Origin: Cyanophora paradoxa CCMP329
Lineage: Eukaryota > Plantae > Glaucophyta
Assembly: GCA_004431415.1 (NCBI GenBank)
Contig: QPMI01000180.1
Span: 126,476 to 190,475, forward strand
Direction: 5' to 3'
Length of the DNA: 64,000 nucleotides
Of this stretch, positions 53,154 through 63,400 are shown in pieces. Below the pieces are notes generated by a model. The model had not been told where the DNA came from, ran no database searches, and was given only the letters and a program-made list of their open reading frames with translations. How positions within the stretch are numbered: the stretch's first letter is position 1; the number at the start of each line of letters is the position of its first letter. Both the position numbers and the translations under genes were made by a program.

Positions 53154-54118
53154 ATGCCGGCGACGAACTCGTACCCGCAGCGCGAGTTCATCGAGTTCTG
53201 CCTCCAGCGGGGTCTGCACGACAGGCAGGGCTCGGTCCTGCCGGCGTCGGAGGCTACACTCTGCTTCTTCGCGGCGCACCTCTTCCGCCGTGGCGGCGTC
53301 GCCCCGCCATCCATCCGCACGTACATCACGGCCGTGCAGTCGCTGCACGTCGACTCCGGCTTCAGCACTTTCTGGGGCTCCATGCCGCGCCTCGCCCGGC
53401 TCCTCGAGGGCATCGCCCGCGTGGCCGACCCTCGCCCCAAACTCTGCCGCGACCCGATCACGCGCGGACAGCTCAGTGACCTCGCCCAGTATGCAGCCGC
53501 CCACCCGTCACCTGAGACGCGGCTCCTCTGGGCCGCCTTTTCCACCGCCTTCTTCGGCTTCTTCCGCTGCAGCGAGGTCTGTGCTGTCCGCCTCCCTGTG
53601 CCCGACCCGGCCCGGCTCTTCCAGCGCCGCGACCTCCGCTTCTTCACGGACGAGGGCGAGAGCTTCGCCCGCCTCCGCCTGAAGAAGTCGAAGACCGATC
53701 AGCGAGGCCAGGGCTGTGACGTCGACATTCCCATGTCGGCGGCCTGGAGTGCGCTCACTGCGCCCTCGAGGCCCTCGCCCTCTCCTGGACGGGCCCCGCC
53801 CGCCCTGACGCCTACATCTTCGCACATGCCGCCACCGGCCAGCCGCTGACCCGTTCGGAGCTGCATGCCGCCCTCCGCAACTGGCTCCACGCCCTCGGCT
53901 ACGCAGCCGACCCCCTGCTGCCGCACAGCTTCCGCATCGGCGCCGCCACCGCGGCGTTCGAGGCCGGCCTCCCTGACTACGCTATCCAGCTCCTCGGCCG
54001 CTGGCGGTCCGACGCTTTCCAGCTGTACATCCGTGCGCGCCCCGAGCTCGTCCGCCGCCAGCGGGGCCTCCTCCTCGCCAGCAGCCACGCGCCCCCAGCC
54101 GCAGTGCCCTCCAGCTGA
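53154..54118 (+). pseudogene. Tyrosine recombinase of a DIRS-superfamily retroelement, with a frameshift at about 53733
   Basis: Intronless. Motifs SIRTYITAV, AFFGFFRCSEV and RLKKSKTDQRGQG, then in the shifted frame HSFRIGAATAAFEAG...IQLLGRWRSDAFQLYIR (catalytic R, HxxR, W, Y). Confidence 0.88.
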
Positions 54119-54189: not shown

Positions 54190-54337
54190 CGGCGCCTTGG
54201 TCCTGCCTCTCCCCTGCTTCGCGTACCCTAGGCCAGACTGCCGTACCCAGGACAGGTGTTGCGAACTAGCCCTAGTTCACGTACCCCTCTGCCTGCTACG
54301 GACTCTAGCCCAGTTTCACGCTCAGGATTTTCACAGG
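54190..54337 (+). repeat. 148-bp direct repeat, copy 1 (B1)
   Basis: CGGCGCCTTGGTCC...GGATTTTCACAGG, identical by eye to 54629-54776. Confidence 0.95.
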
Positions 54338-54628: not shown

Positions 54629-54776
54629 CGGCGCCTTGGTCCTGCCTCTCCCCTGCTTCGCGTACCCTAGGCCAGACTGCCGTACCCAGGACAGGTGTTG
54701 CGAACTAGCCCTAGTTCACGTACCCCTCTGCCTGCTACGGACTCTAGCCCAGTTTCACGCTCAGGATTTTCACAGG
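54629..54776 (+). repeat. 148-bp direct repeat, copy 2 (B2)
   Basis: Identical by eye to 54190-54337. Confidence 0.95.
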
Positions 54777-54943: not shown

Positions 54944-57900
54944 TCAGACGGGGAAGACGGTGTCGTCCGGGGGCGCGGCGGTGCGGCGCATGGCGCGGAG
55001 GCCGGCGATGACCGACGCGCACGTCCGCTTCCAGCGCGCCGTCGCCTGCCACCGCCCGAAGTTGGCCATCACCTGCCGCCCGCCCGCCCCGCCTCAGCCG
55101 GCCGCCCGAGCGCAGGCCGCGGCAGGGGCCGCCGGGCGGGGCGGGGCGGGCCTGGTTGTAGTAGACGCCGAGCTCGGGGAGGCCCTCGGCGATGGTCTTG
55201 TACAGGGGGATGACGATGACGCGGAAGAAGAAGAGCTGGCCCTCCGCCCACGCCAGCTGCTGCTCGAACGCCGACCCCTTCGTGTCCATCCCCGGCGACA
55301 CCTTGAAACCCAGCGCCACCTCCCGCCTGCCCCCGCACGCACGCCTCAGGTCCGGGGCGCGCGCAGCGGCGCCGGGGCGGGGAGGCGCGGGCGGACCGGC
55401 CCTGGCGGAGGAACTCCTGGCGGAGGCGGCGGGACCAGTAGATGGCGTTGTCGAAGCCGCGGGCGGCGTTGGAGAGGTCGGCGCACTTGATCATCATCTC
55501 GCCGAGCAGGCGCGCCTCCTGGAACGAGAAGCCGCCGCCCAGCTTCGAGATGGCGGCCTCGGGGGGCGAGCCGGCCGGGAACGAGCGCGCGTACTCGCGG
55601 ATGTACGACGCGTTGCGCGTCACGTCCGTGGCGAGCACGAGGGCGCGCAGCATCGCCCGGAAGCGGGCGCGCTGGCGGGGCGCAGGCGGTCGAGGATGGC
55701 GGCGGGGCGGAGGGCGCGGAGGGCGGGCTCGAGGGGGCGCTGGGCCGGCGGGGAGAGGGCGCGGGAGGGGAGGTGGAGCGGGGCGGGCTCTCCGGGGTGC
55801 GCCCCAGGCCCGGGGCGGCGGAGCGGCCATGCGGGATGCCGCGGACGTAGGCGAGCGAGGCGCGCCGCCCGTCCCGCATCGGCGCGCGCTGCCCGTCGCC
55901 GTCGCGCGAGGGCTGCGGCGAGGGCGTCGCGCTGCGCGGGATGGACACAGGCGCGCGCTCGAGGGAGCGCCGGCGCTCGCGCTCGCGCTCGGGGCGCCAG
56001 CGGCGGGGCGAGGCCTCGTCGCCCTCCTCGCGCGGCTCCGAGGCCGCCGGCGAGGGGGCGTCCCCCAGGTCCACCACCGGCGGCGCCTCGAGCTCCAGGC
56101 TGTACGCCCGCCGCCGGCCCCGCTCCAGGCCCCGCTCCCGCCGGCTCTGGTGCGAGGCCGGCGCCGCGAACGGGTCCCGCGGCCGCTGCGGCGCCGTCGA
56201 GTCGTCGTACTCGTGCCCGTACGCCTGCGCCGGCCCCCCTCAGCGCCCAAGGCGGGGCGGCGGCGGGGGCGGCGGGCCCCGCACGCACCAGGTCCTCGTC
56301 CTCTGCCGCCTCCGCCCCCTCCAGCTCCAGCAGCTGCAGCGCGCAGTGCAGCTGCGCGGCGCAGCTTTCAGGCCGCGCAGGGGAGGAAAGGGCGGGGCGG
56401 GGCGGGGCGGGGCCCGGGCTCGAGCGCAAGCGGCGCGCACGTGCATCTTCTCGAGGGTGGAGACGGGCCCGTACTTGAGGAACGCCTCCGAGCGCGTCGC
56501 CTGCCCGCCCCGCCCCGCGTCGCCTCGCGGCCCACCCCACCGAGCGCCCCGCGGCCCGGCGCCCCGCGGCCAAGGCGCACCCCCTGGAAGAGGTTCGTGG
56601 TCCCCGGGTGGCTCAGGTCGTGGCACAGCGCCGCCACGATGCACGCCAGCTGGTCCTCCTGCGCCCGACGGTTGGACCCGGAGGCGGCGGGGTGGCCCCG
56701 GGCGGGGTGGGCGGGCCGGGTGCGCACCGGCGCGAGGTACCGCCGGCGGTTGCAGAGCAGGCGGATCATGACGTACATGCTGCGGGCGGATCAGGGTGCG
56801 CCGAGCGGCCGGAGAGGCGGGCGACGCACCAGTGGCAAACGTCGAGGGCGTGCTGGAAGCCGTGGAAGGGGGCGGGACTGTACAGCTGCCGCACCGCCTG
56901 CGGCGCCGGGCGTCACGCGGCGGAGGGCGAGCGCGGCGTATGCGGGCCGAGCGGGGCCGCACGGAGAGGAAGGGGCGGAGGACGGTGCGGGTGATGCCGA
57001 AGCGGGAGTCGAGGCGGAGGCCGTGCAGCATCGCGTGCAGGAACTCCTCGTGCCGCTCCGCCGGGATGCGCCACGTGCACAGGCACGGGTCGTCGATCTG
57101 CGGGGGCGGCGGAGCGCGTCGGGGCGGGCTGCGGGCGGCGGGCGGGCGGGCGGGCGGGGCGGACGATGGAGGCGAGGTCGACGTGGTCGGGGATCATCTC
57201 GGGCCCGCGCAGCTCCGCCGCCAGCGCCTCGGCCGCCGCCGCAACCACCGCCGCGATTTCCGACGGGTCCGGCGGCGCCGTGGAGGGCCGCCGCGAGGTC
57301 GAGATGGGCGGGGGCGGCTCGAGGAGGGCCGGGCCCGAGGCGATGGGCCGGTGCGCGAGGGGCAGCAGGTCCGCCAGGTGCTCCGAGCGCACGAGGAAGA
57401 AGCACGCCGGCTCGCCCCGGGGCGGGGCGGGGCGGGGGCGCCGGGCGCGGCCGCCGGGGCGACGGCCGGGGCGGGGGCCGCGGGGGCGGGGCGGGGGCGG
57501 GGCGGGTGCGGGGCCCCGGGCTCGAAGGTGAAGCCGCGGGCGCGGAGGCGCTCCTCGACGGCGGGGAGCAGGCGATGCGGCGGGGCGGCGCGAGGGCCTC
57601 CATGCGGCGCGCCCCCTCCACCCCCTCCCCCACGCCTCGAACAGCATCCGCTTCCGGCTCACCAGCCCTGCCCCCCCGCCCCGCCCGCTCTCAGCGCCCC
57701 CCGGGCGGGGTGGGGGCGGGGGCGGGGCGGGCGCGCCGGCGAGGCAGGGGCCGGTGTGGATGCCGACGCGGAGCTCGACGGGGCGGCCGTCGGGGAGGCG
57801 GGCGCTCTTGGCGACGGAGGTGAGGTCCAGGGCGAGGTTCGCGGCGCTCTCGAGGGCGCCGCGCTCGGGCGCGAGGACGAGGAGCGAGTCGACGCCGCCG

Positions 57901-60188
57901 CGCAGGCGCTCGAGCTTGCCGCGGTAGCGCTGCTCGACGCAGCGCTCGAGGGCGGCCATGGCGTCGTCGAGGGCGGCGGCGATGGGGCCCGGGTCGGCCC
58001 CCGCGGCCTCCGCCTCCTCGAGGCCGCAGACGCGCACGGCGACCACCGAGGCCTCCCGGTAGCGCCGCACCGCCCCGCCCCCTCCTCCCCGCCCTGCAGC
58101 AGCGACTGCCCGCCCCGCCCCCGTCAGCCGGGGGCGGGGGCGGGGGCGGGGGCGGGGGCGGGGCGGACGCGGGCGAGGGGCGCGGGGAGGAGGGCGGCGG
58201 TGAGGTGCTCGGTGCGGCGGCGCTCGAGGGCGAGGAGCCGCTCGCTCTCCTTGCGCTTGGAGATGTCCCGCAGGACGCCCACGAGGACCTCGCGGCCCCC
58301 GATCGCCGCCCGCGCCACCCCGACCTCCACGGGGAAGACGTCCCCCGAGCGCCGCTTGGCCGAGACCTCCACGATGTCCCGGAAGCGGCGCGCCCCCGTG
58401 CGGATGAAGCGCTCCACGAGGCGGTCGTGGATCTCGTTGAAGGGCGGCGGCATGAGCAGCGCGAGGGGCTTGCCGGCGATCTCGGCGGCGGTCCAGCCGA
58501 ACATGGCCTCGGCGCAGCCGTCGAAGACGACGACGCGCGACTCGCCGTCGATGGCGATGACGGCGTCGCGCGTGAGCGAGAGGTACGCCCGCCCGCGCTC
58601 CTCCGCCTCCCGCCCCGGCCCCGCCTCCGCCAGCGTGTACGTCACCTCCCCCCGCCCGCCCGCGCCCCGGCCCCGCCGCCAGCTCACGCTCACCGCCACC
58701 CCGCTCCCGTCCGCCCGAACCGCCTGCCCCCGCCCCGCGTCGGCGTCGGCCGCCCCGCGGGGCCGGGCGGGGGCGGGGCCGGGTGCGGGCGGACCTGGGT
58801 GGTGCGGGTCTGGCCCTCCTCGCCGTCGAGGGGCGCGGGGCCGAGCTCGCCCGCATCCTGCTGCCCCGACCTGCGCCCCGCCGCCTCGGTCGGGCGCGGC
58901 GAGGCCGGGTGCGGGGGCGGCCGGCGGCACCCGCGGCGGCGCTGGAGGCGCGGCAGCACGGCGGCGAAGTGCTGCCCGACGATCTCCGACGCTGCGCGGC
59001 CAGCTCGCCCCAGGCCCCGGCGGGCGGGGCCCGAGGCGGGCGGGGCGGGGCGCACCGGGCCAGCCGAGCAGGCGCTCGGCGGCTTCGCTCCAGTGGACGA
59101 CGCTACCGTGCTCGTCTGCGGCCGCCGTCAGCGGCCCCGGCGGCCCCGGCTGGCGGCCCCGGGGAGGGCGGACGGCGCACCGCAGACGACCGCCGCCTCG
59201 CGGGTGGCGAGCTGCAACGAGCGCGCGCTCTCCTCGCTCTCCTCCGCCAGCCGCCGCGCCGCCTGCAGCTCGCTCTTGTAGCTGCCGCGCCCCGTCAGCC
59301 CCGCCGGCAGCCGACGCCCCCGGCCCGCCCGCGCACCTTGTCTCCACCGCGGCCGCAGCGGCACACAGCGTTCCCGTTGCAGCTTTGCCCTGCAGGGCTG
59401 CGCTCGCAGGCAAGGAGCAGAGGCGGTCCGGGGGTGCCGCACCCGAGCGCAGGAGCGGGCGCCACAGGGCGCGGCGGCGGCCAGGAGATCTCCGGCGATC
59501 ATATAAAGCACGAGGGCATCGGCCGCGAGCACGACGGCGGCCAGCAGCACCATTCCGGAGCTGAGCCCTCCTCGCTCCGCAAGCGTCCGCAGGATCGCAA
59601 GCTGCGTGGCCACAAACACCGCTGCGCCGCGGGCTTCAGCGCCGACCGGAATTTCGAAGGGTCAAAGTTCGCAGAAGAAAGAGACTCACAGAGAACCGCG
59701 GCGGATCGTGCCGATATTCGCGGGGCGGGCGGAGAGTCGAACTTCACATCAACCTCCGGCCAGCTAAGCTTCCGGGGCGTTGGATGGATGATATGCGGGT
59801 TTGTTGCCGGTGACCTTGCCGCGGCTGGTGCGATCCGCTCCGCGGGTGCGACCGCGGCCTTCGACTCCGAGCTTTGCCGAACAATGAGAGGGGGACTCGG
59901 AGTCCTGAAGGCGTGGTTATTTCTCGGTTTCAAGGTGCTAGTATGTCCTGAAGAGTCGATTGAGCGCCTCCGGACTGTCGACCGTGCGTGGCCGAGCTTA
60001 CTGGTTGGAACCGCGCTTCCGGCCGGTTCGTTGCAGTCGGCGTCGCTTACGGTGATTGATGGCGAGCTGTGCTCGTGCTGCCGGTGCTGGCCATTCATAA
60101 CTTTGAGGCTGCGGCTGTCGGTTTGGCTCGGTCGGGGCTCGGCCGGACTGGCCGGATCGACGATAATGGGCCGGAATCCCGACACCAT
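54944..60188 (-). CDS. Membrane-anchored PAS-PAS-degenerate class III cyclase-class I cyclic nucleotide phosphodiesterase fusion
   Basis: Hydrophobic helices AAVLSVFVATQLAIL and MVLLAAVVLAADALVLYMI. PAS domains ADEHGSVVHWSEAAERLLGW and DAVIAIDGESRVVVFDGCAEAMFGW...RDISKRK. Cyclase fold LRVGIHTGP...AWGEGVEGARRME. PDE motifs PFHGFQHALDV, ALCHDLSHPGTTN, VLATD, IKCADLSN and EFLRQG. Confidence 0.85.
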
Positions 60189-60498
60189 TTCCGCTCTCAA
60201 TCAAGGCGCATGCATCCCCTCTGGAAGCCGCCCGTCGGTCGGCTTGTCGATTTGTTGTACTCGGGCAAGTCGTTGCCCCTAGCCCTGTTTTTTGTTTTTT
60301 TGTTTGGCTGGTGCAGCAGGCGTAGGGCCTTGGCCTCGCGCAGCCTTGTAGAATGAGTCGGCCTTGGGACATCCAGCGCACTCTTTAGCTAAAGGCGGCT
60401 GCCAGGCTTGCTAAGCCAGGGTGAGCAGGCTCTAGCTAACGGCGGCTGGCCAGGGCGGCTCAGCTGCCCAGCAACCGGCCTTAAGTAAAGCAAGAGAA

Positions 60499-63400
60499 AT
60501 GGCATCGATAGCTACAATCCAGGAGCACGACGTGCTCGAAATCGCTGAGCGGCCCGTGAGAACTAAACGAGCCCTCTCGATGCGAGCCGCGGCTGCATCC
60601 GCAGCGGCATCGATTTCCGCGGCACCGCTACCCTCAACAGCGGAAGTCCCGCCGGCCGAGGAGCCGGCTCAGCCAGCCCCTCCTTTGGACACGGAGCGCC
60701 TTCTCGTGCGGCGGCACTCGCTGCCCGCGACAGGCCCGGCGACGGAGGAGACCGACCTGATCTGGTCCCTGCGAGTCCAGTTCAATGCGCCACACCCTCC
60801 GGATCCCGAGACAGGACTTCCGAGAGATCGAGACGCGAACGCCGAGGAGTTCGACCCAGCGATCCACAGCGACGTGGCTCTGTGCCTGCGGTGCGTGGCC
60901 GGCGGTGCCCGTGTGGGGCGCGCGCTGACGGGGCGCGCCAGGGAGAGCATCCGGTTCGACCCGGAAGTGCGTGGCCTGCTGGCGCGCTTCTGGCGCCTCG
61001 CCGCCGGCCGGCGCCGCGAGATCGGCTTCGAGGAGTTCGCGCGGCTGGTGCGTGCCCCGCCGGGGGGCCTTTGGGGCGGGTGGCGAGCGGGGCGGCGGGG
61101 CGCAGCACGGGGCGCTCTACCGGGCCCTCACGGAGGCCTGGTCCGAGGCCGGCGCCGCCCGCGCCGCCGCCGACGACTGGGCCCTCGACTCGTGCGCCCT
61201 GCTCCGCTCCCCGCCTCGCCGCGCCGCGCGGGGCCGAGCGGGCGTGGCGCGGGGGCAGGATGGGGCGGGAGACGATGGGCCGCGAGCGCTTCTTCCGGTC
61301 GGTCTTCGAGGCGATCGACCTGTGGACGACGCGCGTCTCGCGGGCGAGCCCCGCCGGCCCCGCGCCGCCCCCGCGGGGCGCCAGCGGGCTGAGGCGGGGG
61401 CGCAGGACATGTACGTGGAGTTCGTGCGGGCCCTCCTCGGCGCCATCTCCCGCCCCGGCGCCCCGCCCCGCTCCGACGCCCTCCTCCCCTCGACCGCGCG
61501 CACCCGCCGCGCCCGCCGCGCCGGCCTCCTCTGAGGCCGCCGGGCGCAGAGATCGCGCCGGGGGCGGCGGCGCGGCACATCGCGAGCATCGCGCGGGCCG
61601 ACGCGGCGGCGCTGCGGCGCAAGCGGCGCGCCCTCAAGCTCCTCAGCTTCGTGCGGAGGCCGCGGACGCGCGGCAGGAGCGGCTCTACGCCGGGGTCCTC
61701 GCCCCGCGCGTGCGCCCGCCCCGCCCGCCCCTCCTCCCGCGCAAGGCGAGCGCCCCGGCAGGCCTCGGCAGAGGGGCGGAGGGCGGTGCTCGAGGGCCAC
61801 GGCCGCCGGTGCGCGGCGCCGTGCCTGCCTGCCTGCCTGCCTGCCTGCCTGCCGGGCCGGCCGGGGCGGGCGGGACGGGGCCGGCTTATGACTGGGCGGG
61901 GCGCGGGACAGGCGGAGGAGGACGCGTACGCGCGGTTCGCGTCGAGGCGGCGGCGGGAGGCCTTCGGGCCCCCCCGGGCCCGCCGCGCCGCCCCCGCCTC
62001 CGACGGCGACGACGAGGGCGACGATGGTGGGGGCGGGGGCGAGGGCGAAGAGGAGGAGGAGGACGGGGCGGGCCCCCCGGAGGTCGGGCCCGGCCTGCGC
62101 TTGTCCCGCTCCGCCCCGTGCCTGCCCCCGCGCGAGCCGCACCCGCCCCGCGCCATCGGTGCGCCGCTCTCGCGCCCCCTGCCGACGCCTTCTGCCGTCG
62201 TCGACGCTTCGGCAGGCTGGGCGCTGCTGCGGGCGCTGGGGCTCGCGGCCGGCGTGCTGCCGCCGGCCCCGCCGACGTGGCGACGATGCGGGCGGGCCAG
62301 CGGGAGGTGCGGGGCCTGCGTGCCGCCCAGCGCGCCCTCGCCGCCGCGCTCGCGCCGCTGCCGCGCTCGCCCTCGCGGGTGCGGCCGCCGGGCCTGCCGG
62401 GCTCGCCCTCGATGTCGCGGCCGCCGGTGGGCTCCCTCGGCGGCTCCGGCGGCTCGGGCGCCTCCTCGCCCGGCCCGCTCCCCCACGGGCTCCTTCTCCC
62501 GCCCCGCCCCGCCCGACCCGCCCGCCACGCCCCGGCCCCGGCCCCGGCCCCCGCTCGCCCTCCACCCGCACGCCCGCTCCGCCAGCGCCTCCTCCCAGCG
62601 CTCCACCGTGACCGCCCCGCCCCGCCCCGCCCCGCCATCCCGCGTCTGAAGCCCCCGCAGCGCACCCCGCGGGCTCCTTCCGCCGCGGCGGGGCCAGGGA
62701 GGCCGAGGGGGCCCTGCGGCGGGGGCCCCGGCGGAGGGGATGGCGGGGCTGTACGAGTGGCTCCCCGAGGCGGCGGTGGCGGGCATCGGGGGCTCATCGC
62801 CTCGCCCCGCCGGCCCCGCGCCCCTCCGTCCTCCGCCAGCTCTCCCTCGTCGGCCGCCCGCCTCCGCCTCCGCCTCCGCACCGGCCCCGGCCCCGGCCCC
62901 CGCCCCGGCCCCGGTGCCGCCCCGAGGGCCCTCTTCTACCCGGGGGAGCCCCATGCCGCCGCCGCGGGGCCGGAGCCTCCGCGCTCGCCGGCGCCGCCGC
63001 GCTCGGGGAGCCTCTCGGCGCGGCGCGCCCCGCCGGCTGCGCCCGACGCCGCGGGGGAGGCGGCGAGGGCCGCCGAGGAGCCGGCGGCGGGCCGTCGAGG
63101 CCGCCGCCGGTGCCGCCGCTGTGGGCGAGGGGCGGGCGCCGGGCGGGGGGGCCCGTGGCGAGCCCGGACGTGGGGCGGGCGGGGGCGACGTTCCGGGAGG
63201 TGCTGCGGCGGGTGGCGGGCCGGTGGAGGCGGCGGCGGCGGCGGCGGCATCCCCTTCGAGGCCGCCTGCCTCCTCGACGACCCCGCACTCCGCTCCCCGG
63301 CCCCGCGCCCCCGGCCCCGCCGCCTGCCCCGACCCCGCTCCTGCCCCGCTCCCCGCCCCCGCACCCCGCCCGCCGCCCCGCCCCGGGCCCCCCTCAGGGA

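Follow-up and report, generated by a model that had tools for sequence, protein, structure and literature searches.

What does a phosphodiesterase gain from carrying a cyclase domain that has apparently lost most of its catalytic residues? The question is raised by a gene on the minus strand of contig QPMI01000180.1 of the glaucophyte Cyanophora paradoxa CCMP329 (assembly GCA_004431415.1), located at 54944..60188 of the 64,000-nucleotide stretch analysed here (contig positions 126,476 to 190,475; hereafter the window, whose numbering is used throughout). A first-pass annotation, made from the DNA letters alone, had read this locus as a single polypeptide comprising two hydrophobic helices, two PAS domains, a helix, a class III cyclase that looked dead and a class I phosphodiesterase (PDE), and all of these parts were found in the claimed order and place, with profile matches and motifs present. 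Our model of the gene has 19 exons and 18 introns and encodes about 1349 amino acids (aa), from an ATG at 60188 to a stop codon ending at 54944; it served only to check the frame, calculate hydropathy and number residues, while database searches and fold prediction took single exons or stored proteins as queries. According to our best reading, which we hold at slightly less than even confidence, the protein is a haem-gated sink for cyclic nucleotides at the membrane, with the signal relayed to the PDE via a dimer of the pseudocyclase.

The cyclase domain (57390..58105) is class III by fold: its exon matches the Guanylate_cyc profile (E 1.4e-6) and, in the PDB, Rv1625c (E 7e-10), and its predicted fold (pLDDT 87.7) resembles the latter with a Foldseek TM of 0.81. 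In class III chemistry, both metal-binding Asp residues are provided by one chain, and the transition-state Asn and Arg by the partner chain. Here, the first metal Asp is replaced by Arg553 and the second is kept (Asp601), so that the Asp pair of an active cyclase is incomplete. The purine-selecting pair has changed from Lys to Arg597 and from Asp to Glu662, the transition-state Asn has become Glu669 next to a retained Arg673, and the KGKG hairpin has been replaced by a 98 % GC stretch (57420-57520) with zero Lys codons; the Asn/Arg/KGKG set of an active cyclase is thus also broken. At all substituted codons, the covering contigs show no alternative letters. Since the chain lacks one metal Asp as well as the Asn, it would supply neither half-site, and the cyclase looks dead, as had been claimed in the first-pass annotation.

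At E<=0.001, a search of 1.84 billion proteins with the cyclase exon returned only 12, led by the closest relative of the gene, i.e. the predicted C. paradoxa protein tig00000769_g4016.t1 (EukProt, P0006; hereafter g4016). Both share the hairpin-PAS-PAS-cyclase-PDE layout, a 3-residue insertion in the cyclase and an insert in the PDE; identities per exon are 45 % for PAS2, 40 % for the cyclase and 86-100 % for most PDE exons (68 % for one, 72 % for the last). The g4016 cyclase differs in that it keeps the first metal Asp, the purine Lys and Asp and one lysine of the KG motif. As its second metal Asp is a Gly, g4016 may be a second pseudocyclase-PDE. Its gene model contains a retained intron and a probable frameshift after the purine Asp of the cyclase, and no paper on the protein was found. 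Another Cyanophora protein, tig00020960_g16603.t1 (P0024; g16603), is a HAMP-PAS-cyclase-PDE receptor with an intact adenylyl cyclase (AC). Its FixL-type PAS domain with the His, the helix, the cyclase and the class I PDE follow one another as in the gene, but it differs by its intact AC, an outside sensor domain plus HAMP, a single PAS domain and the lack of a PDE insert, and shows 28 % identity in the cyclase exon. The homologous FixL-type PAS, helix, cyclase and PDE, arranged alike, define a Cyanophora PAS-cyclase-PDE family to which the gene belongs. Judging from their residues, the cyclases that precede a live-looking PDE in the Cyanophora genome form a gradation from intact to dead: g16603 is intact, g4016 lacks the second Asp and the gene lacks most catalytic residues. 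A 2014-aa Cyanophora protein, tig00020723_g13506.t1 (P0027; g13506), combines TmcB-type TPR and PAS with an intact AC.

These searches for relatives were bounded by length filters and shared words, so that a blank is uninformative on other glaucophytes. No match came from the protein search with the cyclase region, a result of little weight given its length filter and a degenerate query; the metagenome scan gave no relatives, and the genome scan only prokaryotic ones with 25-50 % identity over parts of the query.

The PDE is encoded in two halves (56289..57097 for the N-terminal one; 54944..55749 for the C-terminal one, including the stop codon), separated by a low-complexity insert of around 170 aa (55750..56224). 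PDEase_I matches were obtained on three exons (E 2.8e-11, 1.6e-8 and 2.7e-4), two of which singly exceed the Pfam cut-off of 24.8 bits (44 and 35). With residue roles as known from PDE4, the metal ligands of the H..H, HD and D motifs noted in the first-pass annotation are present, together with the general-acid His, the E..H pair, the invariant Gln and the Phe clamp; the insert had been overlooked in that annotation. In the N-terminal half, His877, His881, His918-Asp919, Glu948 and His951 are kept, and in the C-terminal half Thr1172-Asp1173, Asp1222, Asn1225, Gln1279 and Phe1282. By residue identity, the catalytic set is therefore intact at all positions checked. For the g4016 PDE, the nearest solved structures were 5vyd/7d7p, which we take to be the choanoflagellate RhoPDE, and PDE9A.

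The insert is, by alignment, homologous to that of g4016 (score 104; shuffles gave a mean of 56 +/- 10, the largest being 100); the two share two short words, one of them a PKA-type RRxS site (Ser1095). A further RRxS (Ser781) lies in the linker between cyclase and PDE (57165..57389) and recurs in this linker in 3/3 Cyanophora fusions, each count alone being weak (P 0.03-0.26). Within the C-terminal half, read depth at 55389-55737 is about twice that of the flanks with no alternative letters, and 92/92 aa at 55399-55674 are identical to g4016, which points to a likely recent gene-conversion tract. The exon at 56963-57097 differs from g4016 at 9 letters, and second letters in the runs at 56986-57082 match g4016 residues.

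On the sensory side, the protein starts with a Ser/Pro-rich region in exon 1 (59690..60188), with a GC content below that of the rest of the gene, followed by the two hydrophobic helices (59485..59705). The second (aa ~190-212) is a strong transmembrane (TM) candidate with a Kyte-Doolittle value of 2.54, whereas the first (aa ~163-181) is marginal (1.78; 1.09 in g4016), so that the two-helix claim is borne out fully for the second one only. The loop between them is very short, with no outside sensor domain. The second helix is common to the gene and g4016, and since g4016 repeats the hydropathy pattern, a hairpin membrane anchor is plausible.

The two PAS domains are of unequal clarity. PAS2 (58262..58597) matches the PAS profile with E 4.6e-10 and, in the PDB, best matches FixL (E 1.7e-17), DosP being a weak match; the sequence search returned only PAS-histidine kinases. 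Its His442 (58429) aligns with the proximal His on the F-alpha helix of FixL and is shared without exception by the three Cyanophora fusions and two PAS kinases from databases. Haem binding is reported to depend primarily on the proximal His (PMC10468136). PAS2 is therefore, as far as can be read from its residues, probably haem-binding, and the sensor role given to it in the first-pass annotation holds to this extent, with gating by a gas as a possible further step. In contrast, PAS1 (58625..59200) is degenerate and spread over five small exons (exons 4-8) that gave no PAS profile match of their own, with no haem His seen; it is recognized by homology to the Pfam-positive PAS domain of g4016 (15/17 identical in one exon). 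At position 59069, in the most g4016-like of its exons, a second letter (C>G on the plus strand) occurs at about one third of the depth in 4/4 runs and is probably the g4016 copy. PAS2 is joined to the cyclase by a signalling helix (58169..58261), described as short and coiled in the first-pass annotation, which aligns with the corresponding helix of g4016 and g16603, in the latter with a weak HNOBA-tail match.

Putting these parts together, the protein would be a membrane-anchored dimeric class I PDE for cyclic AMP (cAMP) and/or cyclic GMP (cGMP), the former being the likely and the latter a possible substrate, which descended from the PAS-AC-PDE receptors of Cyanophora with synthesis lost. 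Haem in PAS2 would bind O2, CO or NO, or read the redox state; by analogy with DosP, the helix after PAS2 would then shift the pseudocyclase dimer, and this shift would open or close the PDE pair, while feedback from a kinase may come in through the RRxS sites of linker and PDE insert. This reading is favoured by the intact PDE residues, the FixL-like PAS2 with its invariant His, the comparable make-up of DosP, the high identity of most PDE exons to g4016 as compared with 40 % in the cyclase, and by the fact that the fast-evolving cyclase still has a class III fold and has kept the helix upstream.

Several observations weigh against a haem-gated PDE. The distal Arg of FixL, which stabilizes bound O2, is not kept in PAS2, where a Glu or an Ile stands, depending on the alignment. 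The linker ahead of the PDE, with around 75 aa, is of low complexity and may uncouple the two domains. The fold prediction leans towards a class III fold because its alignment held mostly intact cyclases, the fast evolution of the cyclase is also compatible with simple decay, and no RNA contig spans the whole gene, though contigs tile most of it.

Some of these observations are also accommodated by a constitutive membrane-bound PDE, in which the cyclase would have decayed into a spacer after duplication and the PAS domains would not gate the PDE. The loss of most catalytic residues, the low-complexity sequence in place of the KGKG hairpin, the flexible linker and the missing distal Arg fit this explanation, and so does the cyclase tree, in which the gene has the longest branch (1.75 versus a median of 0.76). 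The tree is unresolved; the gene groups with another degenerate cyclase, probably due to long-branch attraction. Columns that are conserved in intact cyclases are kept by g4016 alone in 17 cases and by the gene alone in 4 (p=0.007). Against a mere spacer speak the retained fold, signalling helix, Arg673, Asp601 and haem His, with no true frameshift or stop, and we consider this explanation unlikely, albeit the strongest of the alternatives.

Another explanation starts from the fact that class III cyclases work as dimers via this helix and fold, both of which are retained here: the pseudocyclase might pair with an intact AC from its own family, damp it and bring the PDE next to it, thereby creating a local cAMP sink. 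Intact paralogs, i.e. g16603 and g13506, are available as partners. However, with one metal Asp and the Asn missing, the chain could contribute neither half-site to such a pair, and pairing with g4016, which lacks the other Asp, would leave no chain with both. A role as regulatory partner thus seems quite improbable to us.

It is more doubtful still whether the cyclase pocket binds ATP, GTP or a cyclic nucleotide without turnover and tunes the PDE in this way, for which the degenerate GGDEF domain of Caulobacter PdeA, where nucleotide binding without turnover tunes the PDE, offers an analogy. Arg replaces Lys and Glu replaces Asp in the purine-selecting pair, both conservative changes; the catalytic Arg has been retained, and phosphate might be bound directly by the Arg that occupies the metal site. 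However, the phosphate-binding lysines of the KGKG hairpin are gone.

The proposed sink, as well as these three alternatives, presupposes one gene and one protein. Transcript evidence consists of spliced contigs from two runs guessed to be RNA. These contigs start at 60260 and 60253, i.e. upstream of the ATG; the splice between exons 1 and 2 is seen in both runs, with one contig continuing for 415 nt up to position 58659 of the model, and another contig splices PAS2 to the cyclase. A single RNA contig runs from the last strand of the cyclase through the linker into the first PDE exon; this exon was placed on it by length and depth sums (37 = 21.7 + 15.3) and carries the gene's own alleles rather than those of g4016. 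The PDE insert is covered by a contig from 56223 to 55750, and the last PDE exons by a spliced contig joining 55737-55396 to 55325-55151. Contig breaks fall in stretches of extreme GC content or in parts in common with g4016, and the junction at 57407-57516 is bridged by no listed RNA piece. An intron at 57417-57514 was considered for this junction. Neither a branch point nor a CAG acceptor is present for it, and the two RNA runs are each interrupted there, though not at the same position; therefore, a GC-rich coding loop is more likely than an intron, and the 99-nt loop, when translated, has no stop in any frame. Altogether, the gene is real and expressed, and the single transcript implied by the first-pass annotation is well supported, albeit short of proof.

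The window as assembled gives no single open frame, and around six single-base corrections are needed. Contigs of the DNA and RNA runs have an extra base behind 57626, 57562, 55762 (3/4 runs) and 55676, i.e. where the reading frames had to shift; these four single-base deletions within 55676..57626 break the frame in the window only. A fifth base is missing near 58080, where, between 58180 and 58056, 61 letters of an RNA contig stand against 60 of the window model, and a sixth near 57518 is an assumption of the model. The first five breaks are assembly slips, not lesions, and because reads supply the missing bases a pseudogene was rejected. In this gene of a GC-rich eukaryote, the introns are around 50-80 nt long, and their borders are GT-AG in 16 and GC-AG in two cases (donors at 57736 and 55151), with CAG at 18/18 acceptors of the 19-exon model. 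That the locus does not encode one working protein but two genes, a pseudogene or an assembly chimera with g4016, as the frameshifts, the unbridged junction and the part of the PDE apparently identical to that of g4016 might suggest, is thus highly improbable, given the frameshifts repaired by reads, the RNA contig with the gene's own alleles from the cyclase end into the PDE, the loop without stops, and g4016 having the same layout as one predicted protein.

How far the proposed sink differs from known systems depends on which part of it is compared. As stated in the first-pass annotation, CAPE of streptophytes and the CAPE-like proteins of oomycetes are PDE-first, with an N-terminal PDE, central TM segments and an active C-terminal AC (PMC8115329). 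Membrane proteins of the CAPE type likewise unite a class III cyclase with a class I PDE in a single chain; the gene has the reverse order and a degenerate cyclase and is therefore no CAPE. The suggestion that the fusion, or the order with the cyclase before the PDE, was undescribed did not survive, since g16603 has an intact cyclase followed by a PDE and diatom fusions of guanylyl cyclase (GC) and PDE with N-terminal TM segments have been published (PMC4726125, PMC8027222). In Seminavis robusta, eight such fusions respond to pheromone, and the available parts of these papers place both domains C-terminally and name the GC first, with no explicit order (PMC4726125, PMC8027222). An Atlas cluster of 130 proteins, mostly from diatoms, also carries the cyclase and PDE families. 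Like these fusions, as far as the available text describes them, the gene has two N-terminal TM segments and a class III cyclase plus a class I PDE in its C-terminal part. The diatom proteins differ by mostly conserved GC sites and an extracellular stretch, neither of which the gene has, and by the fact that the same parts of the papers describe no PAS domain (PMC4726125, PMC8027222). No close diatom match to the gene was found in the relative searches.

The closest parallel in design, and in the proposed way of working, is bacterial. Escherichia coli DosP consists of a haem PAS, a cofactor-free PAS, a silent cyclase and a phosphodiesterase linked by helices (PMC11543664). Common to both chains are a pair of PAS domains, of which one carries haem (probably so in the gene studied here) and the other is empty, and a silent domain of cyclase fold along with a phosphodiesterase. 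However, DosP is soluble, has its haem PAS first, and uses a silent domain of the GGDEF type and an EAL domain that degrades c-di-GMP, in place of the class III fold and class I PDE found here. The likeness is convergence, not family membership, because the catalytic domains are not homologous. In ESM Atlas clusters from Bacteroidota, Guanylate_cyc is fused to an HD domain, which might be a make-and-break counterpart among bacteria. A literature search, with most subscription papers outside its reach, found no description of a eukaryotic PAS-pseudocyclase-PDE or a haem-gated cAMP PDE. Thus, the cyclase-PDE fusion itself is already known, and the layout with a dead cyclase is the part for which no eukaryotic description was found. 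It is tempting to speculate, though we would lean against it at present, that a gas-gated class I PDE has arisen in a eukaryote, reaching the DosP design independently, and that its family is splitting make-and-break receptors up into members for synthesis only and for breakdown only.

Regarding the surroundings of the gene, a head-to-head neighbouring open reading frame (ORF) starts at 60499 (+), around 310 bp from the ATG, with no Pfam match in its first 164 codons, and two 4-codon upstream ORFs are located in the 5' untranslated region (UTR) near 60215. On the other side lies a frameshifted tyrosine-recombinase ORF at 53154-54118 (+) (Phage_integrase E 0.004, under the cut-off), followed by two identical 148-nt direct repeats (54190-54337 and 54629-54776). 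Judging from their sequence, ORF and repeats look like the end of a DIRS/Ngaro-type retroelement, and the 3' UTR of the gene seems, from contig extent, to reach into the second repeat.

If gating of the PDE by haem fails, the gene would be a further member of a large algal signalling family. In either case, the series of paralogs with intact, half-dead and dead cyclases eases testing the role of the cyclase domain in such fusions. If gating is true, the protein would be a rare case in which a class III pseudocyclase controls the PDE on its own chain, and possibly a gas-switched PDE tool; levels of O2, CO or NO would be coupled directly to the breakdown of cAMP or cGMP in a photosynthetic alga via a single protein.

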